Below, in pieces: positions 5,081 to 59,983 of a stretch of 64,000 bases of DNA. Numbering within the stretch: position 1 is the first letter of the stretch; every line of letters starts with the position of its first letter. The stretch covers positions 9,047,508 through 9,111,507 of the forward strand of contig NC_068981.1 in assembly GCF_001194135.2 (NCBI RefSeq), written 5' to 3'. The position numbers were made by a program, and so were the translations under genes. Under the pieces are notes generated by a model. It ran no database searches. It worked only from the letters and a program-made list of their open reading frames with translations, and was not told the DNA's origin. Source of the DNA: Octopus bimaculoides (taxonomy: Eukaryota).

Positions 5081-6844
5081 GTATGTATGTATATCATCAT
5101 TATTTACCATTTATCTTCCATACTGGCATAGTTCATCAAGGTCCAATGAGCAGGGCTATTTTCTCTAATGCCTGCTTTGGCAAGGTGTCTCTACACCAAT
5201 CATTTTACAGAGGGTACCTTTTTTTCTTTTTATGGCACTGGCACTAATGAAGTGACCATGTACCTCACAAGATTAATATTCCCCTTGACTAAGTAGAGGT
5301 ACAGTAAAGCACAAAGTAGCTTTATTCTAGGTGTTGAATGGTTGAAAGAAGGGACAGGAAGAGGTTTCTTGCAACAGGGCTGATACATGCCTACCTTATA
5401 TTATAGAAAAGTAGGTGGGAGTAATTAAGGCTGAAAACGATAAAAATTGGGAGCAACAAGGTGTGGGAGTGAGTACTCAAGATAAATAGGGGAGAGACAG
5501 AAGAACAGGAAGGGTAGATGGGTGGGTAGAGAGTATGCAGACATGTTGATGATGATGATGATATCCATCATCATTTTACATTTGCATTTTCCTGCTGACC
5601 TAAGTTAGACAAATCAGTGGTTATTATTCATAAATTTACGACCTTCCTAGATGAGATCCCCAACTATTTTTAGAATGGTTTCTTCAGCTGGACGTCATTT
5701 TTAATGCCAATATTTTACAGAGTTACTCGATCCATTTTATCAGGCTCTCAGAATAAGAGAGGCTGTCTTGTCTCAGGCAGATCTAAAGACACCCCACTCA
5801 CTACCATATCTTGTCTCTATTCAATGTAACATGACAAAGAGGAGGGATAGAAGAGTGATGAGAGAGAATTAGGATCAGAAGAGGATGGAAAAGAGACCAA
5901 AGTGGAAGAAAAAAAGGGATCAAGACTGAAAGGGGACAAAGGATAATGTAACATTTAAAAAAAAATGTAAGTAGTTCTTAACTTTTCATTTCTGCTGAAA
6001 CTATATATAGAGTCTGATAAAGGCAAGCAGGGTAAAACTTCAAAGTCACTGTCAACTGCTTCTTTATAAAAGTTTAATAAATATTTGCGTAATCCTTCAG
6101 TTTAATGTTAAATTGTTTTTACATATAACAACATCAAAAAAATAAACAATCCACACACATACAGACACAATATAAGGAGTGGCAACATACTGGAATAAAG
6201 CTTTGCAAACAAGTAGTAATTGAAAGCCAAGCTCTAGAGTACCCTGTCAAAAATGGTCTTAATAATTAATCATTTACTCCAACCAATCCTGCATTAATCA
6301 TCAAACAGTAAATGAAGAAGACTTACTTTCTTTCTCTGCCATCTACATGCTTTGGGCTCCAAACCTCTTGATTGTTGGCAGAATTTCTAGAAAGCAATAA
6401 TCAGAAATTGACTGAGAATGATTCCAAAAATGATGTTTTGTAATATTACAGTTCATAGTTTGTCTGAAAGTTATTAAAATTTCATAGAATATTGACAAAT
6501 AGTGGGGGGGGGGTCATTTGATGAGAGGTTTAGTGATGGGTTCTAGGAGTATATCATCGGATGAGCCCTTCCTTTTAAGTTCATAGGAAGTGATTTGAGG
6601 GAGATTTGTCTCCTATTTCAAGTAGATTAAGCCAACACATTCAGGTTGCTTTGTTGAATGAGTGACTACAATAAAGTCATCACAGAAATCAAACAAACTG
6701 CCTGCCCTGGGGATGCAGTCAGCAATGTTTATGCATTGATGAGATTTAATTTGTTAATCTTACAATTAAGGTGGGGAGCTAGCAGGAATCCTTACCACAC
6801 TGGACTAAAGGCTTAGCGGCATTTCTTTGACTTCAACATTCTTG

Positions 6845-7549: not shown

Positions 7550-8926
7550 TCAAATATCAATCACAATAATTAGCTATAACAGCAGATTGCAGCTTCACTT
7601 GTCCATTTCAACTTTTACATCCCCTAAGGATATATATCATCACTGATTAATGTCTGCTTTCCATGCTGGCATGGGTTGGATGGTTTGACTGATAACTGGT
7701 AAGCCAGGAAGCTGCACCAATAATTATACACACACACACACACACATACATATATATAACCTATACAATATATAAGGTTTTGAATTTATCAACTTCTATT
7801 CAGATTTTTTTTAAAGAAAACATTTCCTCGCTGAAGTAACCAGCAAAATGTCTCTGTGACACATGCCTTCTTCACTTGGATTTGAAAGAGTAAAGTATTC
7901 AAGACAATGGGAAATGTGTATTGTGATATTCATTCCTTTTCCAAGGGTAGCATGCAGTAAATAGAGTAAACTACATCTAAGAATCAAAACCATAGCGAAA
8001 AACCTGTTTTACATGTTTTTCTCATTGACAGAATTAATATTGTGCTTTTGTACAATCAAAATATTACCAAATGTAACAAAAAAAAAAAAGGCTCATACAT
8101 TTTCAGGGAATTATTTGAAAAATGGGATCTTTTCTATTTGGCTGCCAAGGTTTCAAAAATTAAAGTTTATTGAAAATTTTAAAATTTGGTACATTAATGC
8201 ATTTTTCCAAGCTGAATTGCTGGAGATATTTCACTTTTCCAGAAAAATTTAAAAAAAAAAAAGTTATAGATCTTTAAAGTTTGACATTTTTTACCCAGTC
8301 AGGAAGCAGGATTTGGAAACTGTCATTTTCTTTTGTCACTATCCTAAAAATAGCACATGTTGTCAATATTTGTATTCTACATGCGAAAAATGAGTAAACA
8401 ACTTGTCTTTTGTAGTTTTAAGCATTCAATATGCATTTAATGTGATCTCCATTATAGATGTGAGGTTACCGGAGCTTGCTGCCATAATCAGGCAGAACAG
8501 TAAAATTTCCAGGCGGGTAAAACAGTAGAACAGGTGGTTTCAATATATTTGTCAACACAGGTTTTCTCGCAGACAAAAGAGTTCTCATATTCAGCTTGTT
8601 ACTATGGAAACAGGCATGCATGTGTCTGCGGCTTACGATTGGCTAAAATTACCCAAAATTTTCAAACTTTAATTACTAATAACTCTTTATTTATTGATTT
8701 ATAGCAAAAGTGATTTTCATGGCATTGATCAGCTTATAAAAGTGTATCATTATACTGAATATGAAATCAATGTGAACAGAAATTGAAATTAGCAGCCAAA
8801 CGGAAAAGATCCCAAAAATGTATAAATTTAGAGGAATAAATTTCTTAAGTCCCTAACAACATTTTAAAGAAAAACTAGAATCCAGTCATTTACCCACAAA
8901 TCACTTGAAAAGGAAAGAATACTTAC

Positions 8927-9050
8927 AGGCGTGGCACTATATTGCCAGCATATTGTACAAGTTCATACAAGTCAGCAACTTTTCGACCTTTCTGGAACTC
9001 TTCTACAAGATAGAGCTCCAAATGACGCAATTCATCAGAGATGGCCATAT
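8927..9050 (-). CDS. VPS35: VPS35 exon 4 ([42 protein letters not shown])
   Basis: 124 nt, gtaagt donor, contains the conserved PRL(YL) motif. Keeping the frame forces the acceptor to be TG at 9052-9051. Confidence 0.93.
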
Positions 9051-9703
9051 CAAAGGAAAGTCAAAGAAAAACACAACCATAGGCTTAGAGCTACATTTAG
9101 AGCTTCTCATATAAGAAATAAGAAATCACAGCAAAAAAAAAATAATTCTATTTAGCAATTAGTTTTATTTTTTCTCTTTTTACTTGTTTCCGTCAGCCAT
9201 GCTAGGGCTCTACCTTCAAGAATTTTAATCAAATGAATCAACCCCCAGTACTTACTTTTTTAAAGCCTGGTGTTTATTCTATCAGTGTCTTTTTGCCAAA
9301 CTGCTAGGTTACAGGGATGTAAACACACCAACATCAGTTGCCAAGTGGTGGAGGGGACAAACACAGACACAAAAGCACACACACACACACACAGATACAC
9401 GACAAGCTTCTTTCAGTTTCCATCAACCAAATCCATGGCTGTAGTGGAAAACACTTGTACAAAGCGCCACATAGTAGGACCACTCGGCCATGCCTCTATC
9501 ATCATTTTACTGATTGGAGTAGAGTATGATAAAAAGATTTCACAAAAACACTGACATTAAATTCATTAAGCACTGAATTTATCAGATATATTGATTAATT
9601 GGTTTTTAAAAAAAATTAATGCTTTTAATATGACAGCTCATTATTCTATGAACAGTCAGAGGTAAGACAAATATAAAAGGTGACAAACATTTAAAAAGGA
9701 TAC
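9051..9703 (-). other. VPS35: U12-type (minor spliceosome) intron 3 of VPS35 with GT-TG termini
   Basis: 5' end GTATCCTTTTT. Branch-site-like TTTTCTTTGAC at 9070-9060, with the branch A 10 nt from the exon. The intron ends in ctttcctttg. Confidence 0.85.
9175..9490 (-). mobile_element. CORE-type SINE with internal (CA)n, inside the U12 intron
   Basis: Reverse complement of the family seen at 28895-29232. Confidence 0.7.
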
Positions 9704-9800
9704 AGAGCTCATAATAGGTCTTTGGAGACAATAAAGATGTCCTCAGCTCTCCCAGCATGTTTGAAGCATGCTTTAAGCCTTCCATTAATTTTCCTTTGTC
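9704..9800 (-). CDS. VPS35: VPS35 exon 3 ([32 protein letters not shown])
   Basis: tttag acceptor, 97 nt, followed by the U12-type donor GTATCCTTT. Near-identical to human [32 protein letters not shown]. Confidence 0.96.
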
Positions 9801-10789: not shown

Positions 10790-13330
10790 ATCATCATCAT
10801 CATCGTCATTTAATGTCTGTTTTCCATGCTGGCATGGGTTGGACAGCTTGACTGAGGACTGGCAATCCAAAAGACTGCACCAGGCTCCAATCTGATCTGG
10901 CAAGGTTTTTACAGCTGGATGCCCTTCCTAATGCCAACCACTCCTAGAGTGTAGTGGGTGTCTTTCATGTGCCACCAGCACGGGGGCCAGTCAGGCGGCA
11001 CTGACATAGACCACACACAGATGGTGCTTTCTATGTGCCACCAACACTGGCATTGGCCACACTCCAATGGTGCTTTCTACATGCCAGTCAGGTGGCACTG
11101 GCATCGGCCACGACAACGATTTCACTTGACTCAACAGGTCTTCTCAAGCACAGCATATTACCCAACAATTAAAGGGTACTTTTAAACAGGCCAGTTATGC
11201 AACACTGGCATCAGTTCCCTCCTCTGTTAGGGTGTGACACTTCTTCACACAGCTGTCCTCATCCATACCCAACACATGACCATACCAGCGCAGTCGTCTC
11301 TCTTGCACACCACATCTCATGCTTCTTATGTCTAACTTTTCTCTCTGGGCGCTAACACTCTGTTGTGTATGCACAGACTTTACACATCTAGTGGAGTATA
11401 CTACCTTCATTCCTTGCAAGGTTACACATGTCCTCAGTGGTCACAGCCCATGTTTCACTGCCGTTTAGCATGGCTGTTCGTATACATGTGTCATACAGTC
11501 TGCCTTTCACTCTGAGCGAGAGGCCTTTTGTTACTAACAGAGGTAAAAGCTCTCTGTACTTTGCCCAGACTATTCTTATTCTAGCAGCTATGCTCTCAGA
11601 GCATCTAGCCCCCACTACTGACTTGGTCACCTAGGTAACAGAAGCTATCCACTACCCCTTCTTTTCCCCACTAGCATGTAATGGAATCTGTTTTCTGTAC
11701 ATCTTCGGTGTTTATTGTCCCTGTGCATTTGTCACACACAAAAACTATCTTTCCAGTTAACCTTCCTTTGATATTGCTGCACTTCTTATGCGTCCACAGC
11801 TTACACTGGGTACACCTTATGGAGTTTCTACCTACACCTTTTCTACAGATCGAGCAGGGTCATCTACCTGAAGGGATTTGTGATTTGTCAGCCTTCCTAC
11901 TTACTAAGACTTTGGTTTTTGCTAGATTGATTCTAGGGCCCTTCGATTTTAGACCTTGCTTCCACACCTAGTTCTGGTAATGACTCAGCAATAAGAGCAA
12001 GGTCGTCAGCATAGAGGAGATCCCAGGGGCAGCCATTCTTGAATTCTTCTGTTATTGCCTGGAGGACTATAATGAATAAGAGAGACCTGAAGACTGATCT
12101 TTGGTGAACCCCTACTTGTACCCGGAATTCTTCACTATACTCATTGCCAACCCTCACCTTACTGACAACATCCTTGTACAGCTCTCACCAACCACTTGTC
12201 TATCACTAGTTTCCGTAGTGACCACCAGAAAAGGGATCAAGGGACCCTGACAAAGGCTTTCTCCATGTCAACAAAAACCAAGTTCAGAGGTTTATCTTTG
12301 GCTAGGAATTTCTCCTGCAGTTGTCTTACCAGAAATATAGTATCAGTGGTGCTTTTCCCTGGCACAAACCCACTGCATCTCGTCTAAACTAACCCTCTCC
12401 CTAATTAATTGGGACATGACCCTCTCTATCACTTTCATCACCTGATCCAACAATTTGACACCTCTGTAATTATTCCTATCTAAAGCGTCACCTTTACCTT
12501 TGTAGCAGTTGACTATGGTGCTGCTATACCAGTCATTAGGTATGACTCCATGTATCACCTGGTTGACTATATGGGTAACTAGGCTACAGCCTACACTGCC
12601 AGATTTTTTAAGCATCTCTACAGTGATTCCTGATGGGCTGAGGGGTTTCCCTGTCTTCATACCCTCAATTGCTTTATCTACCAAGGTACTGTCAATTCGG
12701 ATAGCTGGTCCCTCTGTTGGGTCAACATTTGGCAGACTCTCTTTCTCACATTCATTCTCTTCATTTAGCAACCTTTCATAGTAGCATCTCCAAGTCTCTC
12801 TCTCTGCAGCATCATCATATGTAAGTGAGCCACCATCCATGCGGATACATTTCTCTCCTATGACATCACGATTCTCTCACACTGTCTTGCAATACAAAAC
12901 ACTTCAAGTCTCTAGTCCTCACGATGCAGAATATTGGTAAATTTTGTCCTATCTGCTTCCCCTCTGGCTAAGTACACCTGTCTCCTAGCTTCCCTTCTAG
13001 TGATCTGATACTGTTCCCTGCTACCACTGTTCTTCCAGTCCTTCCATGCCCGTTTCTTTTCTCTAATGGCCCTGTCAAATACATTGTTCCACCACCACAT
13101 TACCTTAGGTTGAGAGGGGACTTTGCACCAGCCACAGATCTGGTTAGTGGCCCTCAAGAGGTTGTCCTGTAGGAACCTCCAGTTGTCCTCCCCATTATAT
13201 GATGCTATATCCTCCTCTTTTTCATCAAAAGCTTCAAGTAATATGTCTCTAAATCCCTGTCCATTCAGAGGAGCCTTAAGCTTCCAGACCCTTCTTTTCT
13301 CTGCTGGTGAGGAACCTAGCAGAACCTCCT
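10790..13330 (-). mobile_element. Largest RTE LINE copy (linker, RT, PHD, C-terminus, modular 3' UTR); frameshifted and 5'-truncated
   Basis: YRGVKLLDQVMKVIERV, RVQVGVHQRSVFRSLLFIIV and LLYADDLALIA in ORF-track fragments; (CAT)n tail at about 10790. It ends roughly 90 bp from the VPS35 exon 2 donor. Confidence 0.93.
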
Positions 13331-13423: not shown

Positions 13424-13525
13424 CAAACATCTTTTCATCTGAAAAGATTGACTCTTAACCACTTTTGTAGCTTCATCGAGAAGTTTTTCTTGCTCTTCCT
13501 GTGGTGATAATTGTGGTGTTGATGG
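13424..13525 (-). CDS. VPS35: VPS35 exon 2 ([34 protein letters not shown])
   Basis: tttccag acceptor, gtaaat donor, 102 nt. Matches the VPS35 N-terminus (human [28 protein letters not shown]). Confidence 0.96.
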
Positions 13526-18612: not shown

Positions 18613-18615
18613 CAT
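18613..18615 (-). CDS. VPS35: VPS35 coding exon 1 (initiator ATG only)
   Basis: Minus strand reads catcATG|gtgggt. Exon 2 starts in phase 0 without a Met. The site lies in the CpG-containing region facing ORC6. As I recall, human VPS35 exon 1 also contributes only the ATG. Confidence 0.75.
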
Positions 18616-18894
18616 GATGAAATCATGTGACTAATTTACTCGGCAGGACGAGATTATATCAGCAGTCGGGTTTCCAATCTAAAATCTAAAATAAAATAAA
18701 ACATTTAGATCGGGTGATTTCTATAAGATAGTTATAGGTATCGAAACAAAATTATTATCCAACTGATATTTATTAAATAATAAAAATATATTAATTTTTT
18801 TCCCATCATTCAATATTTCGCGGGAAATCTAATGTGTTGGAGGTGAACAGCTGTGTTTTAGCGGGGAAACAGTTTTATTGAAATCACTGAGAAA
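18616..18894. promoter_or_regulatory. Bidirectional promoter and 5' UTRs shared by VPS35 and ORC6, with E2F sites
   Basis: 279 bp between divergent ATGs. TTTCGCGGGAAA at 18816-18827 and GCGGGGAAA at 18861-18869. CpGs are locally retained. Confidence 0.8.
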
Positions 18895-18947
18895 ATGCTT
18901 CAGGTCTTGGGAACAAAACTCGGATTAACAAGTGTTTCAGTCCTCAA
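18895..18947 (+). CDS. ORC6: ORC6 exon 1 (MLQVLGTKLGLTSVSVL)
   Basis: First ATG after an in-frame TAG, gtaaat donor, phase 2 joins exon 2 in frame. Resembles human IGRLAPRLGL. Confidence 0.75.
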
Positions 18948-19057
18948 GTAAATATATCTTTTTTTTATATATCGAAATTGTTGACGTTAAAATATATTCA
19001 TTTATTTCTTATTTAGATTCTAACGTAAATCTATTAAAACGATCAATCTTATTACAG

Positions 19058-19205
19058 ACATGCTAATGAAATCTGTCGCAAGATGGAAAGTGGTCCAAAT
19101 GTAATTTCTTTGTCATTTCTTCGATTAAGCCAGTCCTGTAAATGTGTCATAGCTTTGGATCTGGCAGCCAACAAATTTGGATGTCATCTTAAAGAATCGG
19201 ACAAG
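19058..19205 (+). CDS. ORC6: ORC6 exon 2 (KHANEICRKMESGPNVISLSFLRLSQSCKCVIALDLAANKFGCHLKESDK)
   Basis: ttacag acceptor, gtaggt donor. ALDLAA corresponds to human CLDLAA. Confidence 0.85.
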
Positions 19206-19730
19206 GTAGGTGAATCGAAATGATATTAATCTCTTCTATATTTTTCTTCATTTTTGTAAGTCATATATTATTTTGTTGGCGACATACAACAAATAAATAC
19301 AGACGTCCATCCATTCTAGGAGCTGGAAAGATAATCTATAATCAGAGATTTTAAAATCAAATAATGCCATAAGCACGACCAACAATGGGGTGCTCTGTGA
19401 CTAACTCGAGAGTCCTCGAGCTGATAAATATCAGCCCCGTCTTTTATTGAGAAGATTTTACATTGGTGTAATTACTTCTTCGCCATGGTGTTGGATCAGT
19501 TTCTTCGCCCTCCCCTTCTTTTCCAATCCTCCCGTGCCCCACTTCCATTATAAGCGAACTCTGTGATGTCCTAAGAATGTGTGGCATTCCTTCTACTCAT
19601 TCTGCCTTAGTAAATTATTTGTTTTTAATCTTTATTATCCATGAAGCCCTGATATGTTTACTTCATTAAGTATTTAAAGTAGGGGCGATCTTTCGATACT
19701 AATCCAATTTTTTTTTCTCTTTTAATCCAG

Positions 19731-19894
19731 TCGATGGCCATAAAACTGTCAGGCTTGAATAAAAAAGCATATTTAAATTCTTTCAAAACTGTTGAAAGTT
19801 TGTTGGGAGAACAACAAAAATCCTCCATTCGAGAACTTTGTGTACAGTTTGGGTGTACGGATATCGCTGATGTGGCCCAGGAAACACTCAACAG
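19731..19894 (+). CDS. ORC6: ORC6 exon 3 (SMAIKLSGLNKKAYLNSFKTVESLLGEQQKSSIRELCVQFGCTDIADVAQETLN)
   Basis: atccag acceptor, gtaaat donor, 164 nt. Matches human IKLSGLNKETY...IRDLAVQFSC. Confidence 0.95.
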
Positions 19895-20767
19895 GTAAAT
19901 AGTAAATACCTGTGTATTGTTTTGTTTTTTAAGTATTAAAAAAGTAAATACTATTGTTTTTTGTTTTATGCCATCCGATGTACATTTTGATGCATCTTAG
20001 AGATTTATCATCACGAGTTAAGCAAATACTGTCACTGTTGAGTTCATACTATTGAAACATGTTTGGAGTTGTCTCTCTTTGGGAAATAATATAATTGAAA
20101 TATTAGTCATTAACTGATATGGTTTTAACTGGAGAAGCATGATCTCCAGGGGCTACTGCAGAATCATCGCACCTCTCCTGAAAAAATTATTTCGGATTCC
20201 TACGTTTTAGATGTTGGAGATTATGAATATGCAAACTCCATCCTCTATAGGACCACCATATTTAGTTGGCAAATATAGTTTATGAATAAATGGACAGGGA
20301 TAAATAGATAGACAAATAAATAAATAGATGAAAAAGTTAAAAATTTTAAATTGGGGAGGGGGTGAAACTAAACTCTGCTTGCGAAGACCTGTTGAGGCAA
20401 GTGAAATCGAAATCCATATTTCTGGGTTGATAGAAGTTTGAAAAAGGCATGGGTGAGCGAAAGATGAGAAATGGATGTAGTGAATGGTAGATAAGGGTGG
20501 GAGGGTATCCAATGGTACACATACGATATATATAAATATCTCATTTAGATTCATCCAGAATGAAGTAATGTGGCTTGATGCTAAGTTGTTTTATAATCTC
20601 TTTTTTCATTCCTTCATTGTAATTGAGAGATTGTTGCCAATAAGAATATAATTCTCTGGTAATGTTTGGAATTGAGAATTGCAGATTTACTGACAGCAAT
20701 AATGGATGCAAAAGACTCATTAAAACTCCACAAAAGCTAAGATGTCTTTGATGTCTTTTTATTTCAG

Positions 20768-20857: not shown

Positions 20858-20889
20858 GTAAGTTGCTTGAATTAGCTTTTATCTTTTAC

Positions 20890-21085
20890 TTGTTTCACTC
20901 ATTGTGGCCATGCTGGGGCATCTCTTTGAAGAATTTTCACTTGAATGAATTGAATCCCAGTACTTTTAATTTTAAAGCCTGGTACATCATATTCTATCAG
21001 TCTCTTTTGCCAAATTGCTTAAGTTACTTGGGATGTAAACACACCAATACCAGTTGTCAAATGGCAGCGGGGAACAAACACAGGC
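20890..21085 (-). mobile_element. CORE-type SINE 3' part
   Basis: Same family as 9175-9490. Confidence 0.65.
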
Positions 21086-22365
21086 ATGAAAACATTTATA
21101 TATATATATATATATAAATTAAAATTTAGAGGTAATACTTGACAATTGTAAGCACCTGTGTATGCCAGCTCGTGGTTCAGGTGAAAGAATAAATTGTAAA
21201 TCCCAAAAATAACAACAAAACTACAAAGGATTCCGCGGTACACGTGTTTCAAGTTTTATATGTGTATAATTTACAATGTAAAGCTATCCTCAGCCGCAAA
21301 ATTATTTCTCTCCCAGGATATTATACCACATCGGCGTTGAAGTAGGAAGAAAGGTGTGATGTAAGAGGTGAAGATCCTTTCGGTATTCTGTATAGAACTA
21401 TACCTCGTATAATTCTCCACCCAGACATAATTTCTCCGGTCCTCTGAAAACCGTCCATACCTTGCCACGATTCTACACACTGATAAACAGTGATTAAGAC
21501 AATTATCATCTCAAGTGTTGTGCTGTGCCTTAATTTAATTAAGAAATGATTGATGATGTAATCAATTGTTGGCTATTAGGTTATTGTGGGGTATTCTGGC
21601 AGGATTATCTGCTAATTTAAGTTGATAATCCAATAACAACCTTCAGATATGGTTTGAGATAAATAATAGTAACAGATTTGGAATTTAAACTAGCAGAAGT
21701 GTTACTGTAGAGTCTCTAGCAGGGTGCCATGAAATGGCTTCTCAGTCTACTGCAGGTAAATATTATTGATTGAAGAGAGTAAAAGTGATTAGCATCAGTT
21801 TTGCCTAAGAATATTGGTAATGCCAAGGAAATGATTCGTGCTCAAAACTAGTCTCCATAGAAGCTTAACAAATGTAGATGTCTTTTAAAATTTGGATATT
21901 TCTTGGAATAGACGTTTTATTAATAAAAGTTTTTTTTTTGTGTTATTGATCTCATTCCAGTATATTATTGGTATACCAACTGACAGAATTAGAAAGTAAG
22001 TTAGTCAACATGAACAAAGGCTTGTCAGACAGTTCCGAAAGTGGCATTGGTTGATCTGTTACTGTTTTTCATACCTGTAGTAACATTAATGACCATTTTG
22101 AAGTCCTCCAAGACTGGGAGAAAGAAGTGATGAAGTTACCTTAGGCATCACTTCAGAATCTGCTGAAAACCTGTGGTTTACCTGTTTTCTATGGCTTCTG
22201 TTGTTCAATTATATAGTTCATATTAAAGAATGATTGTTTGGAATTATTCAGGATGTTGTGTATGTTTGTTTCAGAACAATAATTGACAAATGAGAGTTTA
22301 GAGAGTAAAAAAAAAATACCATCTGAATCAGTGAAACAATTCTTTTTCTTGTTATTTATTTTCAG

Positions 22366-24199: not shown

Positions 24200-24795
24200 C
24201 CCCAATCTAGATATAACCAAGGAAGATCTGAGACGAGGTGGTGAAGCATGACCTTCGAACATTCGGCCTTACAGAAGCAATGACAAGAGACTGAGACCTC
24301 TGGAGATATGCTGTGGTTGAGAAGATCTGGCAAGTAAAGTGAGATTGCAGCCATGGCCAATGCCAGTTTTGCATAACCAGCCCATTCCAAAATACTCTTG
24401 AAGCATCAGGAGATTTAATGTGCTTGAAAAGACCTGTTGAGTCAAGAGAAATCGTAGTCGTGGCCAGTGCTGCCTGACTGGCACCCATGCTGGTGACATG
24501 TAATAAGCACCATTCAAGTGTGGGTTGATACTAGTGCTGCCTGACTCCCCATGCCGGTAGCACATAAAAAGTACCATGGTTGATGCCAGTGCACCCTGAC
24601 TGGCTCCCATGCTGGTGGTATGTAAGAAGCACCCACTACACTCTCAGAGTGGTTGGCATTAGGAAGGGCATCCAACTGTAGAAACCTTGCCAGATCAGAT
24701 TGGAGCCTGGTGCAGCCTACTGGCTTGCCAGTCCTCAGTCAAACTGTCCAACCCATGACCGCATGGAAGTGGACATTAAATGATGATGATGAATC
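24200..24795 (+). mobile_element. 5'-truncated RTE (ORF end, modular UTR, (GAT)n)
   Basis: DEVVKHDLRTFGLTEAMT remnant, three ggt(gg)cacgtaaaaagcacc-like modules, and the tail. Confidence 0.85.
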
Positions 24796-25626: not shown

Positions 25627-26174
25627 AAGATGATTTTATTAAAAAAAATTTTTGTATTCTCCTTATTTTGAATGTCTTGATCAAGTTTCAGTATTATATT
25701 TTTGTTGTATAAAGCTGTTTATTAGCATTACATGTTATATATATATATAATTATGTGTATTTCTTCTATCTTAATGAATAAAAATTCTTCTGATCGAATA
25801 AATGGGTTAATAGAAACCAATGTAGCAAAGAACACAAAATAACTGTGGTTTAGTTCCTGTTTTTAAGGCAGGAACTCCTTGAAATTTTGGGTATTTGAGT
25901 ATATTTAAGAATTTAAGGATTGGAGAAAACGCATGTTATAATTGCATACTTTATTCCTACATATGTTTCAAAGGATTACAACCTGTGTGATCCNNNNNNN
26001 NNNAAGAACACAAAATAACTGTGGTTTAGTTCCTGTTTTTAAGGCAGGAACTCCTTGAAATTTTGGGTATTTGAGTATATTTAAGAATTTAAGGATTGGA
26101 GAAAACGCATGTTATAATTGCATACTTTATTCCTACATATGTTTCAAAGGATTACAACCTGTGTGATCCATAGG

Positions 26175-28894: not shown

Positions 28895-29232
28895 ATATAT
28901 ACACATGGTTCCAGGTTCAGTCCCACTGCGTGGCACCTTGGGCAAGTGTCTTCTACTATAGCCTCGGGCCGACCAAAGCCTTGTGAGTGGATTTGGTAGG
29001 CAGAAACTGAAAGAAGCCCGTCGTATATATGTATGTGTGTCTGTGTTTGTCCCCCCAACATTGCTTGACAACAGATGCTGGTATGTTTACATCCCCATAA
29101 CTTAGCAGTTCAGCAAAAGTGACCCACAGAATAAGTACCAGGCTTACAAATAATAAGTCCTGGGGTTGATTTGCTCGACTAAAAGGCAGTGCTCCAGCAT
29201 GGCCACAGTGAAATGACAAACAAGTAAAAGAG
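28895..29232 (+). mobile_element. CORE-type SINE with internal microsatellite
   Basis: ggttcagtccc B-box, gcaccttgggcaagtgtc CORE-like block, internal (TA/TG)n, and 3' gcagtgctccagcatggcc..aaacaagtaaaaga. Confidence 0.8.
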
Positions 29233-34064: not shown

Positions 34065-34375
34065 AAACTATTTAGAAGAGTGGAGCGAGGTCGTTGCCAG
34101 TGCCGCTGGACTGGCTCCCGTGCAGGTGGTACATAAAATACACCATTTTGAGCGTGGCCACTGCCAGTACTGCGTGACTGGCCCTCGTGCCGGTGGCATG
34201 TAAAAGCACCCACTACACTCGGAGTGGTTGGCGTTAGGAAGGGCATCCAGCTGTAGAAACACTGCCAAATCAGATTGGAGCCTGGTGCAGCCTTCTGGCT
34301 TGCCAGTCCTCAGTCAAATCGTCCAACCCATGCTAGCATGGAAAGTGGACGTTAAACGATGGTGATGATGGCTAT
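34065..34375 (+). mobile_element. Young RTE 3' UTR copy (two modules)
   Basis: CpGs are intact and the sequence closely matches 35105-35355 and 37370-37840. Confidence 0.9.
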
Positions 34376-35104: not shown

Positions 35105-35355
35105 TAAATGTAAAATACACCATTTTGAGCGTGGCCATTGACAGTACCACCTGACTGGCCTTCTTGCCGGTGGCACGTAAAAGCACCCACTACACTCTTG
35201 GAGTGGTTGGCGTTAGGAAGGGCATCCAGCTGTAGAAACTCTGCCAGATCAGATTGGAGCCTGGTGTAGCCATCTGGTTCACCAGTCCTCAGTCAAATCA
35301 TCCAACCCATGCTAGCATGGAAAGCGGACGTTAAACGATGATGATGATGATGATG
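35105..35355 (+). mobile_element. Young RTE 3' UTR copy with a probable TSD atgtaaaa(aa)tac
   Basis: Tail followed by (GAT)n. Flanks at 35108-35118 and 35353-35365. Confidence 0.88.
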
Positions 35356-35598
35356 TAAAAAATACATTGGTTACGTGATGAAGTAAGCTCTTTGATACCA
35401 GCCTGCCAGGGACCATTCTTCATCCTCTGACACAATTTTTTTGTTTTAAACTGATCTAAATTAAAACCTTCTTCCATCAAAATTTCATGTTAATTTTATG
35501 TTCCATTCACCAGATTAATAATGACCAAAGTCATTTTACTAAATTCTACATTATTTTCAAAATTAATTGAAATAAAGGAATTGTACTTCGAAAGAAAT

Positions 35599-37369: not shown

Positions 37370-37840
37370 TTGATTGGGCCTCACCGAGGCGATGACTACG
37401 GACCGAGACCTTTGGAAATGGGCTGTGCGTGAGAAGACCCGGCAAGCCAAGTAAGATCGTTGCCAGTGCCCCTGGACTGGTTCTTGTGCGGGTGGCACAT
37501 GAGATGCACCATTTTGAGCGTGGCCGTTGCCAGTACCGCCTGACTGGCTCCTGTAGGATTTTCGAGCGAGATCGTTGCCAGTGCCCCTGGACTGGCTTGT
37601 GCGGGTGGCACATAAAAGACACCATTTCGAGCGTGGCCGTTTTCGTGCGGGTGACACGTAAAAGCACCCACTACACTCTCTGAGTGGTTGGCGTTAGGAA
37701 GGGCATCCAGCTGTAGAAACTCTGCCAAATCAGACTGGAGCCTGGTGTTGCCATCCGGTTTCACCAGTCCTCAGTCAAATCGTCCAACCCATGCTAGCAT
37801 GGAAAGCGGACGTTAAACGATGATGATGATGATGATTCAA
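37370..37840 (+). mobile_element. Young RTE 3' end with internally duplicated hairpin modules
   Basis: ORF-end remnant GLTEAMTTDRDLWKWAVREKTRQAK*, repeated modules, and (GAT)n. Confidence 0.9.
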
Positions 37841-43964: not shown

Positions 43965-46010
43965 TCAAGATCAAGGTACAGCTCCTGGATTGGATAATAT
44001 TCCAGTTGAAATTCTGAAAGCAGGTGGGGATCATATTTCATNNNNNNNNNNTCAAGATCAAGGTACAGCTCCTGGATTGGATAATATTCCAGTTGAAATT
44101 CTGAAAGCAGGTGGGGATCATATTTCATCTGAAATTCATAACCTGATAACTCGAGTTTGGAATGAATCTTTTGTCACAGGAATGGATAAATGGCATTCTA
44201 ATCTCTGTATACAAAGGTAAGGACCCAAAGGCAGTGTGTGGTAATTCTAGAGGGATAACTGTCTTGGCACATACCGGGAAGATACTTTCAAGGATCATGT
44301 TGGATCGTCTCGTTGCAAATATGTGTCCACATTATTCCTGAAGAACAGTTTGGTTTCAGACCTGAGCGAGGAACAATGGACATGGTATGTTCTGTGAGGC
44401 AGGTTCAAGAGAAATTCTTTGAGGAACAAATTCCATGATACCAGGTCTTCGTAGATTTAACTAAGGCATTTTACACAGTAAACAGGGAGGCACTGTGAAT
44501 CGTTTTGTGTAAACTTGGCTGCCCAGTACATTTTGTGAGGTTCTTTAAGGAACTACACAAAAACATAAAAGCTCAGGTAGTCTTTCATGGTGAGCTATTT
44601 CATGAATTGTTGGTGGACAACGGTCTCAAACAGGGAGATATTCCTACCCTAGACTTTTCTCTATTTATTTTGCTGCATTGTTTTAGTATGCTTTCAAGGA
44701 TTGCAACAGGGGAATCGAAACCAGATTTCAGGCATTTGGTCGCATTTTTAATCTGACCTGGTTTAACTGCAAAGCAAAGACTTTTAAAACACTTGTAAGA
44801 GAGTTACTTTATGCTGATTTGATGGCACACTCAGAGGAGGATATGCAATATATAATGGACAGATTTTCCACTGCATGTGTACATTTCAGACTCACAATTA
44901 GTCTTGGGAAAACTAAAGTAACGTTTACTTCTGCGCCAGGACAAATATATTCTGAACCAAATATTTTTGTGAATGGAACACGGTTAGAAGTCATTGGCAC
45001 CTTTGTTTACCTTCGAAACACACTGTCAAGGAATGGTGGTCTTGATGCAGAGATATACTATCGAATAGGAAAGGGAAGTGTTGCATTTGGAAAGCTCGAA
45101 AAGTGAGTGTGGGTGGATAGAAGTATTTCCCTGCAGACAAAAATCAGTGTCTATAAAACGTGTGTATTGACTGCACTTCTTATTCGAGTGAGATGTGGAT
45201 CACTTACAGGTGTCCTATGAAAATGCTGGAGAGATTTCATCAAATGTGCCTCAAACGTATCCTGGGAGTCAAGTGGGAATGTTTCATACCAGATACAGAA
45301 GTTTTGCGCATGACACCTAGTTCAATTAAACACCATGTTATCTTGGCTCAAATAAGGTGGACTGGACATGTTATTAGAATGAAAGATGAGTGATTGCCAA
45401 AGCGTCTTTTTCATGGTGAGCTCAGCTCTGGTAAGTGACCACAACGTAAGCCGACGAAAAGGTATAAAGATTGTATGAATGAAAACCTGAAGAAACTAGA
45501 TATGAACAAAAGTGATTGGAAAAATGATGTTCTGGATCGGAAGGAGTGGAGAGGTGCTGTTAAGACTGGTTGCAATGCCTGGGAGGAAAAAATGATTCAG
45601 CACTCTGAGCTTAAAAGGGTCTGTCGCAAAGGAACAATTGAGACTGTAATCAACAGTGAACATTGAATATGTATTATGTGTGATTATGTTCTGTTGTCGA
45701 AAGCAGGGAAAATCGTAATGCTCAGATATGTAATGATCTTGAACACCAACCGCTTCTTACGACTTGTGTCATGTGTCACAAAACTTGTAAGACAATAGCT
45801 GGACTTAAAAGACATCTGCTAGTTCACAAAAAGATTCCTTCAGAATCAGATTCCAAAGGACAAAGATGTAAAAGAAAGATGAATAATATCTGTCACTTGT
45901 GTTTTAAAGCCTGTCAATCAGCAGCTGGTCTCAAAAGTCATCAATGGAGGGATTGTGCTGTGTGGTGGTGTGTGGAGTGTGTGTTGATGGGGCGGCTATC
46001 ATCTGTCAAG
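43965..46010 (+). mobile_element. RTE (BovB-like) LINE: RT plus C-terminal C2H2 finger array, decayed
   Basis: APGLDNIPVEILKAGG, EEQFGFRPERGT, VFVDLTKAF, GLKQGD, ELLYAD, IRWTGHVIRM; fingers at 45670-45940. Confidence 0.92.
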
Positions 46011-46729
46011 ATGAAGCAATCATCACCTATGTATGTTTGTATGTATGTATGTGTGTTTTTATGTCTGTGTTTACATCCCCGTTACTTAGTGGTTCGACAA
46101 AAAAGACCGATAGAGAAAGTACTATACTTTAAAAGTATGGTGCAAATGTTTCACTCCTGCATTTGGTTCATTAATCTCTAAGTAGTGTTTATGTTTTCAG
46201 TATTGTTGACCCCCGCCAGATACAATAGTGCTGCCCAAGAGTGGAAGACATAATGGCATCCGTTAGTTAGCTGATGATAGGTGTATATATTTCGTGTGCT
46301 TATTGACTGCAAATCCTTTGTATCTTGTGTTCTTGGGGTTCTAACTTATTACGAAAACATAATTAAATATTATAAGAGTCTAAACGAAATATAAAATAAT
46401 TAATAATAACAATAACGAAATATACATTATGAATTAAAATAATCTTGTACTAAGTTAGAAAAAGTGTTCTAGGAAGGGAGGCACAGGATAAGTGAAAACA
46501 TGAAAAATTGCTACCCAGAACCAAAACATTTTGAGAAAGTGTTTCAGTAATCGTTTGAAGTTTTTGTAGATTGCAAAGTAGTAACCTTCTCTACGGTGCA
46601 AACAGGGTGTATTTTGTTCTTTTGATGTATAGTCTGTTGTTTTCTCTTTAAATCTTCATCTGTTTTGTTCTCTTCCAGTTGCCAGAAGTATTTCGATAAA
46701 GTCTAAAGAATTTTTCTCTTTATCTCTAA

Positions 46730-50600: not shown

Positions 50601-52379
50601 TCAAATTCTGTTGTTTTCATGTTTGTGGGGGTGATGGGGTGTATGTTTTTTTATGTGATTTTATTTGTGAAAAGTTGTGTGTGTGTGTGTGTACACAGGT
50701 TTGTGTGGTAGTAAAATAAATTACACTTGATTTCAAAAATAAATCTTGACATTGGCCATATTAGAATACTGACTATATATATCATGTTATTATTGTTGTT
50801 GTTTTAATTATTAATCATTTTCATTATCATCATCATCATCATCATCATCATCANNNNNNNNNNTCATCATCATCATCATCATCATCATCATTAGCATTCA
50901 TGCCATCCTGCTAGGACAAGTCCTAAATATAGGTCTTAAGACAGAGAACCACCAATGTGGGTGGTGGGACAATTGTCGTTATTGTAGGGTGGTGGATGTG
51001 TCCAAACTCTTTTGTGGTTTTTTATGTGATTTATTGATAGATCTATAACTGATCTATAGCTGGGTCATAGTTAGGGATTGGTAATGCAGGCCTGGCTGCA
51101 AGACAGAGTTACAAAAAAGGGAGCAATCATTGACCAAAGTTACTTCCAAAGTGATTCTCATTATTTTTCTTCTTATTTTGAGTCAAGAAGGCAGCAAGCT
51201 TTAATATTTCAAACTTGACATTATAGTATTTACGCATCATCCATAGCTTCAATCTAAAATAAAATAAAAATTTAAACTATTAATCGAAAATAATTAATTA
51301 GCATAAATAAATAATTAACATTGTGGCTGAAAATAATTAGAGGCAGTTTTTTTTTCTTTTTAAACAAATAAATAAAACTATTTAAAAGATTTGTTTTGGT
51401 GCAAGATGACACAAAGATGATTGTTCACTGACACCACCTGAAAGTCTAATCTGAAATGTTAGTAAATAATTAAAATTCTAAATAATTCTGTTGTTGATTC
51501 AAGGTGAGTTTAAATCCTGGACATTCAACTTTACTTCAGTCTCAAAGGAACCAACTTCCCTCAAACACTGTGTTTTCTCTTAAATATCTCAGAAATTGTT
51601 GCCAATGGAAGACATTTTTCACCTCTGAAGGAATATTCAGAGATGTGTCTTGTTTATTAATATTGTATTTGTAGTGTGGCTAGCTTCCTCTAAACTAGAA
51701 TATCCTGCGTTTACTCAGAACATATTAATCTATAATCTGTCAGCATAAAACAAACAATGAATGCATGAACCACTGACTAATAATAAACCTCTGACCTTGG
51801 ACAGGGTTTAAAAACTAGTTTTTATATTGAGAAGAGGTGGAAAAAGAAAAAAACCCCACCACCTGACTTTCCATTGGCAAATCGGATTCTTTTAGTTGTT
51901 GGCTGAAAGAAAACAAAGCTGCATTGTTACTTCTTCAGCTTTTGCTCCTCTCAACTTGCTACCACCACCACCATCACCCTGCAACCTTTACCACTACCAA
52001 CCACATTATTGCCACAAACACCACCACCACCACCGCCGCNNNNNNNNNNNNNNNNNNNNNNNNNNNNNNNNNNNNNNNNNNNNNNNNNNNNNNNNNNNNN
52101 NNNNNNNNNNNNNNNNNNNNNNNNNNNNNNNNNNNNNNNNNNNNNNNNNNNNNNNNNNNNNNNNNNNNNNNNNNNNNNNNNNNNNNNNNNNNNNNNNNNN
52201 NNNNNNNNNNNNNNNNNNNNNNNNNNNNNNNNNNNNNNNNNNNNNNNNNNNNNNNNNNNNNNNNNNNNNNNNNNNNNNNNNNNNNNNNNNNNNNNNNNNN
52301 NNNNNNNNNNNNNNNNNNNNNNNNNNNNNNNNNNNNNNNNNNNNNNNNNNNNNNNNNNNNNNNNNNTATATATATATAT

Positions 52380-52659: not shown

Positions 52660-52737
52660 GGTTAGAGTGAGACAGAGAGACAGAAACAGGTGTCTTGCTG
52701 TAGAGGAAGTACATAATTACCTGGTTGGAGAGAGGGA

Positions 52738-52787
<50 letters not shown>

Positions 52788-52960
52788 AAGTGACAGAGAG
52801 AGAAAGACAAAGTGACAGAGAGAGACAGAGAGAGACAGAGACAGAGAGTGATCAAGAATGAGGAGGAGAGAAACAGGTGTGTTGCTGTAGAGGAGATAAC
52901 CAGTCAGAGGGAGAGAGAAAGAGAAAGAGAGAGCAAGAGAAAGAGAGAGCAAAGGAGAGC
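52660..52960. repeat. (AG)-rich purine tract
   Basis: Direct reading. Confidence 0.9.
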
Positions 52961-53899
52961 TGGACAGAGATGGTGGTGAAGTGCCAGGGCATACTCACAA
53001 GGAACAGGGGTCAAAATATAAAAGGGATGGTAGAATAGAGCAAGAGTGATAGATGCTGGCAAGTCTGGGGGTCGTAATATAGATGGCAGGGTATTAGCAA
53101 AGTAGTGAGAGATGGATGCCAAGAGTGTGGGTGTGAGGAATGCAATGACTGGTGAAACTTGGGTGTATAGGGGTNNNNNNNNNNNNNNNNNNNNNNNNNN
53201 NNNNNNNNNNNNNNNNNNNNNNNNNNNNNNNNNNNNNNNNNNNNNNNNNNNNNNNNNNNNNNNNNNNNNNNNNNNNNNNNNNNNNNNNNNNNNNNNNNNN
53301 NNNNNNNNNNNNNNNNNNNNNNNNNNNNNNNNNNNNNNNNNNNNNNNNNNNNNNNNNNNNNNNNNNNNNNNNNNNNNNNNNNNNNNNNNNNNNNNNNNNN
53401 NNNNNNNNNNNNNNNNNNNNNNNNNNNNNNNNNNNNNNNNNNNNNNNNNNNNNNNNNNNNNNNNNNNNNNNNNNNNNNNNNNNNNNNNNNNNNNNNNNNN
53501 NNNNNNNNNNNNNNNNNNNNNNNNNNNNNNNNNNNNNNNNNNNNNNNNNNNNNNNNNNNNNNNNNNNNNNNNNNNNNNNNNNNNNNNNNNNNNNNNNNNN
53601 NNNNNNNNNNNNNNNNNNNNNNNNNNNNNNNNNNNNNNNNNNNNNNNNNNNNNNNNNNNNNNNNNNNNNNNNNNNNNNNNNNNNNNNNNNNNNNNNNNNN
53701 NNNNNNNNNNNNNNNNNNNNNNNNNNNNNNNNNNNNNNNNNNNNNNNNNNNNNNNNNNNNNNNNNNNNNNNNNNNNNNNNNNNNNNNNNNNNNNNNNNNN
53801 NNNNNNNNNNNNNNNNNNNNNNNNNNNNNNNNNNNNNNNNNNNNNNNNNNNNNNNNTGGCCACACTCAAATGGTGCTTTTTAAATGCCAAATAAATTTA

Positions 53900-59090: not shown

Positions 59091-59983
59091 TAAATATATA
59101 TATATATATATATATTNNNNNNNNNNNNNNNNNNNNNNNNNNNNNNNNNNNNNNNNNNNNATTTAAAACCAGTGGCCCAACATATTGAAAAATCTGAAGA
59201 TTCAGAAAAATTATATTACATATATATAAGAAGGATGACCACTAAGTGGACATCCATTTTGCTAGATGTAGACCCCATATGGTCTGACCACTAAGAAAAG
59301 ATTGTTCTCAAAAAAATTCAGCGGCCATGAAAAGACTAAAAATTTTCAGTGACTTTGAAGTTTAACTGGTTGAAACTTCAAAGTCACTCTCAATAATATT
59401 CTTGTTTAAGAATAATGTGTGTGTGTGTACAAAAAAAAAAAAAAACTCCCACAACAACTATAGTTATCCGTAATTATAAAAGGCAATTTACAAAACCCCA
59501 TCGACTGAATTCCCATTAAAACATTAGAAACAAAACCTAATCACTGACACCCCACAACCAATTAACAAAGCCGACTAAAATCTCCTTTCAGACCAGTCTA
59601 AAATAATAGTGGAATCCAACCAGAACCAGGAATCACAATAATGAAAAACATTGAAATAGTATGAATAGAAGTCACCGAAATGTCAAAACAAACAACCAAA
59701 AACATATACAAATACACAGACACAACAAATGTAGACATCCAATCAGAAATCTTGATTGCTATTTGCCACCACTAAAACCATTTCCATCAGCACAACCATT
59801 ACTAACAATGACAACCCCCCCCCACACACACACACCAATTTATTTTCATGAAAATTAATTGGCTGACTTGTAGCTGTTAAGATAGTTGGAGTGAGATAAT
59901 CAATACCGGCTGCCAAAGATGTTAAAAATTTGAGCTTTTGGCTCCCAACTCACTCTCCCACAGAACTGTAACTCTTTTTACTA

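Follow-up and report, generated by a model that had tools for sequence, protein, structure and literature searches.

Intron 3 of the VPS35 gene from Octopus bimaculoides ends in TG, and raises the question of whether this end is really used to join exon 3 to exon 4 and, if it is, which of the two spliceosomes removes the intron. The locus was analysed within a window of 64 kb (the whole stretch of DNA presented here), together with its counterparts from other cephalopods, other molluscs, a brachiopod and a monotreme. The result is that intron 3 is very probably a constitutive U12-type intron of the rare GT-NG subtype. The first-pass annotation of this DNA had already proposed a minor-spliceosome intron with GT-TG ends in VPS35, and this reading has been borne out by a donor agreeing with the U12 consensus at 9/9 positions, a branch box, U12-type orthologues and the literature on mammalian VPS35.

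Gene structure and the exon 3/exon 4 junction

VPS35 lies on the minus strand, where a tblastn search with VPS35 placed eight coding exons from 13525 down to 980. The elements that concern intron 3 are the following, a slash marking an exon–intron boundary here and below:

18615..18613, minus strand: coding part of VPS35 exon 1, consisting of ATG only, followed by the donor GTGGGT
13424..13525, minus strand: VPS35 exon 2 (PSTPQLSPQ...MKRCL), with the U2-type flanks ttccag/ and /gtaaat
9704..9800, minus strand: VPS35 exon 3 (DKGKLMEG...TYYEL plus the first base of a Tyr codon), from tblastn and sequence
9051..9703, minus strand: VPS35 intron 3, assigned to the U12 type, 653 nt, GT-TG termini, phase 1, from sequence and orthologues
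9695..9703, minus strand: U12-type 5' splice site GTATCCTTT, a single match in the window
9170..9435, minus strand: interspersed-repeat-like segment in intron 3, without conservation in other genera and outside the splice signals
9060..9068, minus strand: putative U12 branch-site box TTCTTTGAC, whose predicted branch A (9061) precedes the last intron base by 10 nt
9051..9052, minus strand: non-canonical 3' terminal dinucleotide TG, from sequence
8927..9050, minus strand: VPS35 exon 4 (AT ATG GCC, that is (Y)MAISDEL...NIVPR plus CT of a Leu codon), with the U2 donor GTAAGT in its 3' flank at 8926

In the tblastn alignment, ...SPKTYYEL falls at 9800..9705 and MAISDEL... runs from 9048 onward, and intron 3 splits the Tyr codon as T/AT. 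Exon 3 closes with ...TATTATGAGCTCT at 9704 on the minus strand (...TAT TAT GAG CTC T), and the intron opens with GTATCCTTTTT from 9703. The 3' region of the intron reads TTTTCTTTGACTTTCCTTTG, its closing stretch being ...GTTGTGTTTTTCTTTGACTTTCCTTTG and its last base 9051, with the terminal TG at 9052..9051, and exon 4 begins with ATATGGCC at 9050 (AT ATG GCC ATC TCT GAT GAA). The interval 9051-9703 and the exon numbering given in the first-pass annotation are thus right, as the intron measures exactly 653 nt and exon 1 contributes its ATG only; so is the start of exon 4 as AT ATG GCC at 9050, preceded by TG, which is seen both in the sequence and in the tblastn alignment. The remaining VPS35 introns in the window are all ordinary GT-AG introns with pyrimidine tracts.

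Among the acceptors translated, only the 9704^9050 junction yields the reading YYELYMAISDEL. This junction cannot be slid, because a G follows exon 3, a G precedes exon 4, and the mRNA needs T-A. Every alternative acceptor that was translated leads to a stop codon. The AG located 33 nt upstream gives ...ELSYGCVFL and then an in-frame TGA, and an acceptor shifted by +2 gives ...ELYGHL and then a stop in the shifted frame, both outcomes having been foreseen; the first downstream AG also produces a frameshift and a stop. From 33 nt upstream to 35 nt downstream of the TG acceptor, there is no productive AG. A joint shift of both splice sites by +1 or +2 was rejected as well, as it would replace Tyr by Cys and is contradicted by the TAT of the Sepia RNA contigs described below.

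The window holds six N runs (25994-26003, 44042-44051, 50854-50863, 52040-52366, 53175-53856, and 59117-59160), all at 25994 or beyond and none within VPS35. The very low apparent GC content and the odd skew at 52-54 kb are due to these N runs, which a (GA)n tract at 52728-52959 adjoins. The repeat-like segment of intron 3 matches window positions 28988-29184, 20877-21094, and 46066-46134 at 73-77%. Families of interspersed repeats of ~200-460 bp, with copies 73-97% identical, are scattered through the window (further copies at 10793-11003, 24577-24792, 34083-34370, 35133-35364, and 37373-37835), and are probably SINE-like. A Rfam scan of the window returned no family over threshold and no snRNA genes.

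Splice signals of intron 3

The donor GTATCCTTT agrees with 9/9 positions of the U12 consensus /RTATCCTTT. A U12 donor is conserved in 10/10 loci compared, and GTATC-TT is invariant in the nine aligned species. In the 64 kb, counting both strands, GTATCCTTT occurs once, at the exon end predicted from homology, with ~0.68 occurrences expected in the window, and the looser donor and branch patterns (RTATCCTT and TCCTTRAY) also occur there at chance frequency. Because the three motifs are found at chance level, their count has been set aside as evidence; the non-random aspect of the donor is its placement and its conservation, not its count.

A U12-like branch site had been located 10 nt from the 3' end, and the box TTCTTTGAC, with its A at 9061, agrees with that position; we infer this A to be the branch point. 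Written as TCTTTGAC, the octopus box agrees with 7/8 positions of TCCTTRAY, and the strict match is found in Argonauta only (TCCTTAAC), with the same spacing as in the octopus. Compared to TCCTTAAC, the commonest form, TCTTTGAC bears two changes, C-to-U and A-to-G, in the third and sixth positions, both of which would still pair with the U12 snRNA as G·U wobbles. The aligned boxes from the other cephalopods are TTCTTTAAC in O. vulgaris and O. sinensis, TTCCTTAAC in Argonauta, and TTCTTTAAT in Sepia, with identical spacing. U12 introns have no distinct pyrimidine tract and hold their 3' splice site close to the branch point, best at 11-13 nt (PMC3584512), so that the 10-nt spacing of intron 3 is just under the published optimum.

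At the 3' end itself, the G at position -1 and the A at exon position +1 are invariant in the nine aligned species, while the base at -2 is T or C in cephalopods but A in the other species. Of the features that define the GT-NG subtype together with use of the exact junction in mRNA, a first G, a last G, and a base other than A at -2 are present in the five cephalopod assemblies.

Conservation among cephalopods and use of the junction

The orthologous introns of four other cephalopods have the following ends:

O. vulgaris (L003): 5' end T/GTATCCTTTTT, 3' end TTCTTTAACTTTCCTCTG/AT, termini GT-TG
O. sinensis (L012): 5' and 3' ends as in O. vulgaris, termini GT-TG
Sepia pharaonis (L004): 5' end T/GTATCCTTAG, 3' end TTCTTTAATCCTTCTTTG/AT, termini GT-TG
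Argonauta hians (L002): 5' end T/GTATCCTTTTT, 3' end TTCCTTAACTTTACTTCG/AT, termini GT-CG

A non-AG end of intron 3 is therefore found in all the cephalopod genomes checked (5/5). The introns of O. vulgaris and O. sinensis measure 608 nt, are identical to each other, and show 82.6% identity to that of O. bimaculoides. When the intron bodies of Sepia and Argonauta were compared with the octopus intron, no similarity was detectable outside the splice signals. What these two introns have in common with it is the signals, not a recent common sequence.

Direct evidence that the GT...TG junction is in use comes from a cuttlefish. Two Logan RNA contigs, L005 (SRR8281692) and L006 (SRR8281663), of ~3 kb each, carry an uninterrupted coding sequence of 815 aa, read GAACTT TAT ATGGCA (CTT-TAT-ATG) across the junction, and agree with the S. 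pharaonis genome at 96-100% over their exons. Five Logan RNA-assembly proteins fall in the 90% cluster of the octopus protein, and all of them (5/5) read ...TYYELYMAISDEL... and contain YYELYMAISDEL. For O. bimaculoides, the evidence is indirect, and consists of the RefSeq models, the homology, and the absence of alternatives; the RefSeq isoforms of this species (XP_014777339.1 and XP_014777341.1) and of O. sinensis all contain the junction. Among RNA-derived contigs, N-terminal protein queries of 164 aa and 431 aa, run for octopus sequences, gave no cephalopod fragments, and elsewhere only Sepia-like contigs were obtained.

Some of these sequences also differ at their very N-terminus, where the single-codon exon 1 gives way to MACHLLHEVYGFE... 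and MVKKTE... (O. sinensis P0245/P0247 and the Sepia-like RNA P0252), which hints that cephalopod VPS35 has alternative first exons.

Origin of the non-AG acceptor

Comparison with the orthologous intron of other animals, which had been suggested as a check, was extended to three further molluscs, a brachiopod, and a monotreme:

Haliotis: 5' end T/GTATCCTTC, 3' end GACTTTAACACTTGCCAG/, termini GT-AG
Aplysia: 5' end GTATCCTTT, 3' end TTTTTTAACCAACACCAG/, termini GT-AG
Mytilus: 5' end GTATCCTTC, 3' end TTCCCTAACATATCATAG/, termini GT-AG
Lingula: 5' end GTATCCTTA, 3' end TTCCTTAAGTATGTGACAG/, termini GT-AG
Monotreme: 5' end GTATCTTTT, 3' end TCCTTAATTATATGGTAAAAG/, termini GT-AG

In all five outgroups, the intron interrupts the same Tyr codon in phase 1, with a T/GTATC(C/T)TT donor, a U12 branch box, and an acceptor that is AG. 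Cephalopods end this intron in TG or CG, whereas the other molluscs, the brachiopod and the monotreme have it as a U12-type GT-AG intron. Measured from the branch A, the last intron base stands 10 nt away in all the cephalopods, and Haliotis, Aplysia, and Mytilus share this value; Lingula has 11 nt and the monotreme 14 nt. The monotreme has U2-type introns 2 and 4, leaving intron 3 as the only U12-like intron between exons 2 and 5. This layout agrees with the assay of the human VPS35 minor intron, which employed an RT-PCR amplicon from exon 2 to exon 5 (PMC12332006).

Intron 3 is best read as an ancient U12-type GT-AG intron, ancestral in bilaterians. Since the outgroups are GT-AG at the same codon, the A-to-T change at -2 probably took place in the coleoid ancestor, and the simplest history would add a later T-to-C change in Argonauta. 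The split between Octopodiformes and Decapodiformes dates from ~270 million years ago.

Over cephalopod history, the intron has kept its donor, its branch box, a spacing of 10 nt, and its terminal G, while position -2 went from A to T to C. This supports a model in which the U12 3' splice site is chosen by distance and by a terminal G, and shows that the base at -2 is dispensable in vivo for at least intron 3 of VPS35. Cephalopod VPS35 intron 3 constitutes a natural experiment on how U12 introns choose their 3' splice site.

Proposed splicing mechanism

What defines U12 introns is the pair of 5' splice site and branch site, which the U11/U12 di-snRNP reads together, and the protein Urp/ZRSR2 contacts their 3' splice site (PMC3584512). 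In intron 3, the di-snRNP would read GTATCCTTT as donor jointly with TTCTTTGAC as branch box. After branching at A9061, the second step would join exon 3 at the first downstream G, 10 nt away. The spacer in between is all-pyrimidine in the octopus; in every cephalopod, the G is the first one to follow a 9-nt spacer otherwise rich in pyrimidines, being also the first purine in Octopus and Sepia. The terminal G would preserve the pairing between the first and the last G of the intron, and the base at -2 would be dispensable for intron 3.

The requirement for the U11, U12, U4atac, and U6atac snRNPs has been experimentally established for the mammalian orthologue only (PMC8034651, PMC12332006), VPS35 being a known mammalian minor-intron gene, and for intron 3 in cephalopods we infer the same dependence on the minor spliceosome. 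With regard to the termini, GT-AG and AT-AC are the most efficient pairs, yet other 3' ends work as well, according to the experiments summarised by Sheth et al. (PMC1557818), and U12 introns with non-canonical termini can be spliced, often at lower efficiency (PMC3584512).

The next-to-last base has been addressed in a model intron too. Dietrich et al. are said to have found in 2005 that most of its mutations impaired U12 splicing. As those -2 mutants were mostly defective, the efficiency of intron 3 may be reduced, and its splicing may be sub-optimal.

Alternative explanations

The explanation that survives best besides constitutive U12 splicing is that the non-AG acceptor is functional. According to this idea, which had been put forward earlier as a control point, intron 3 would be inefficiently spliced or regulated, and its retention, leading to a premature stop, would set the dosage of VPS35. 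The non-AG end has been kept across coleoids, although a single mutation restores AG, and the reduced efficiency often seen with non-canonical U12 termini (PMC3584512) points in the same direction, as does the 69-aa model of O. vulgaris, which comprises exons 1-3 and stops inside the intron region. However, this model is more simply explained as an annotation artefact, full-length spliced transcripts assemble readily in Sepia, and position -2 drifts between T and C, as would be expected if constraint had been relaxed and no particular base were being selected. Moreover, neutral processes explain much of minor-intron evolution according to Larue & Roy (PMC10639083). The control point is speculative and is considered improbable, though less so than the other alternatives; fixed signals with a changing -2 base do not by themselves show that VPS35 is regulated.

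A broader version, to which we give slightly less credence still, is that coleoids have kept the non-AG acceptor since the Octopodiformes/Decapodiformes split either because it is useful or because their minor-spliceosome machinery has changed. If the former were true, intron 3 could throttle or switch the dosage of retromer (VPS35), its minor splicing being inefficient or regulated. If the latter were true, cephalopods would have a looser recognition of position -2, and an excess of GT-NG introns would be expected across the genomes of the clade.

Removal of the intron by the U2-dependent spliceosome with a TG 3' splice site, as in some U2-type GT-TG introns such as that of GNAS, is very unlikely. 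U2-type TG acceptors do exist (PMC4176328; ARS2 in PMC1557818), and the 25 nt ahead of the octopus acceptor are pyrimidine-rich. However, the donor CTCT/GTATCC is poor for U1 and perfect for U12, and is invariant in nine aligned species, whereas U2 donors drift. A U12 branch box is found at a fixed short distance from the acceptor, the mammalian orthologue of the intron requires the minor spliceosome (PMC8034651, PMC12332006), and there is no tandem AG nearby, unlike in the cases of alternative TG sites. Neither of the features expected for U2-type TG acceptors, a MAG/GTRAGT-like donor and a TG used alongside or in place of a nearby AG, is present in intron 3.

The two weakest explanations deny the TG acceptor itself, and the chance of either is negligible. 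An assembly or sequencing error hiding a T at plus-strand 9052, and thereby an ordinary AG, is an escape left by the fact that the window is the public assembly itself (1-20615 is 100% identical to GCA_001194135.2 CM046601.1) and cannot check its own base call, but it is ruled out by four independent assemblies without AG (TG in O. vulgaris, O. sinensis, and S. pharaonis, CG in Argonauta), the nearest surroundings of 9052 being also free of gaps. Splicing by another route (through the AG that lies upstream at 9084, or through an unseen microexon), which would make the TG junction an artefact of homology inference, has nothing in its favour besides the rarity of TG acceptors, and runs against the in-frame TGA that follows the upstream AG, the frameshifts from the remaining acceptors, and the Sepia RNA contigs, where exons 3 and 4 are joined directly with no insertion.

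Consequences for annotation and neighbouring features

The TG acceptor has a practical consequence for the gene models of VPS35, which is essential and highly conserved. It had been predicted that this exon would be mis-annotated, and models from four species are indeed truncated, split or garbled at intron 3. The UniProt models of O. bimaculoides, CAI9715682.1 of O. vulgaris, and the model of Argonauta hians (which spans L002 10001-31229) start at MAISDEL, without exons 1-3. Intron 3 also divides the O. vulgaris gene into models of 69 aa and 747 aa (L003 1-9573 and 10001-37469), and the Sepia pharaonis model (L004 10001-83098) has a garbled N-terminus that rejoins the common sequence at LRHLELYLV. 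The first 67 residues of the VPS35 models from O. vulgaris, Argonauta, Sepia, and O. bimaculoides (UniProt) are therefore missing or garbled and need to be corrected, and gene predictors for molluscs should permit U12 donors with NG acceptors. The Sepia pharaonis model also bears a low-complexity C-terminal tail rich in F, L, and S.

An additional small coding exon, NSANNQEVWSPKHVDGRER, lies at 6329-6385 on the minus strand, in an acidic loop after ...LPDVADEAG. All the cephalopod models and the RNA-derived proteins of Sepia contain this exon, whereas Haliotis and human VPS35 lack it, so that it appears to be cephalopod-specific.

Upstream of VPS35, in the region 18613-20615, its ATG (18615..18613, minus strand) stands head-to-head with ORC6 (plus strand, from ~18895), a few hundred bases apart. 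The divergent VPS35/ORC6 pair is also found in O. sinensis (L012 1-223), Argonauta (L002 1-5196), and the monotreme (L007 1-181), and looks like an ancient bidirectional-promoter microsynteny kept from cephalopods to mammals.

Comparison with known systems

The closest known system is the orthologous intron of vertebrates. Vps35/VPS35 is mis-spliced in the U11-null mouse cortex and after knockdown of RNPC3, and also in patients with Roifman syndrome, Lowry-Wood syndrome, or cerebellar ataxia of early onset (PMC8034651, PMC12332006). Vertebrate intron 3 is like that of the octopus in gene, position, and phase (YYEL/Y/MAISDEL), as well as in its nearby U12 branch box, and its donor belongs to the same family (GTATCTTTT in the monotreme and GTATCCTTT in the octopus). 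However, it ends in AG, at a distance of 14 nt in the monotreme, whereas the cephalopod introns end in TG or CG at 10 nt.

The subtype itself has already been catalogued. Table 2 of Sheth et al. 2006 lists eight GT-GG introns and one GT-TG intron (PMC1557818), and De Wolf et al. 2021 include GT-TG among the human G-type minor introns (PMC8280824). In animals, Supplementary Table S1 of Larue & Roy 2023 gives 159 GT-GG, 46 GT-CG, and 29 GT-TG introns, GT-TG making up 0.039% of ~73,700 conserved minor introns (PMC10639083). As Octopus sinensis is named among the species of Larue & Roy, intron 3 may already be in their data; in the literature searched, no paper naming a non-AG minor intron of VPS35 in cephalopods was found.

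With these G-type minor introns (GT-GG, GT-CG, and GT-TG), VPS35 intron 3 shares a U12 donor that begins with G, a G as its last base, and a base other than A at -2. The GT-GG minor intron of ARAF, kept between human and mouse, is an example of this rare and recurrent subtype. Unlike other G-type minor introns, that of VPS35 has held its non-AG end across Octopodiformes and Decapodiformes, with a switch from TG to CG within the clade.

On the other hand, the U2-type TG introns of GNAS, TSPYL2, and ARS2 have their GT-TG termini in common with octopus VPS35 intron 3. These introns hold U2-type donors and pyrimidine tracts, whereas the donor and the branch site of the octopus intron are U12-type. 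Furthermore, the TG sites of GNAS and TSPYL2 are alternative splice sites (PMC4176328), while the octopus TG is the sole productive acceptor. Set among these systems, VPS35 intron 3 is a real, conserved, and clearly U12-type member of a subtype already on record.
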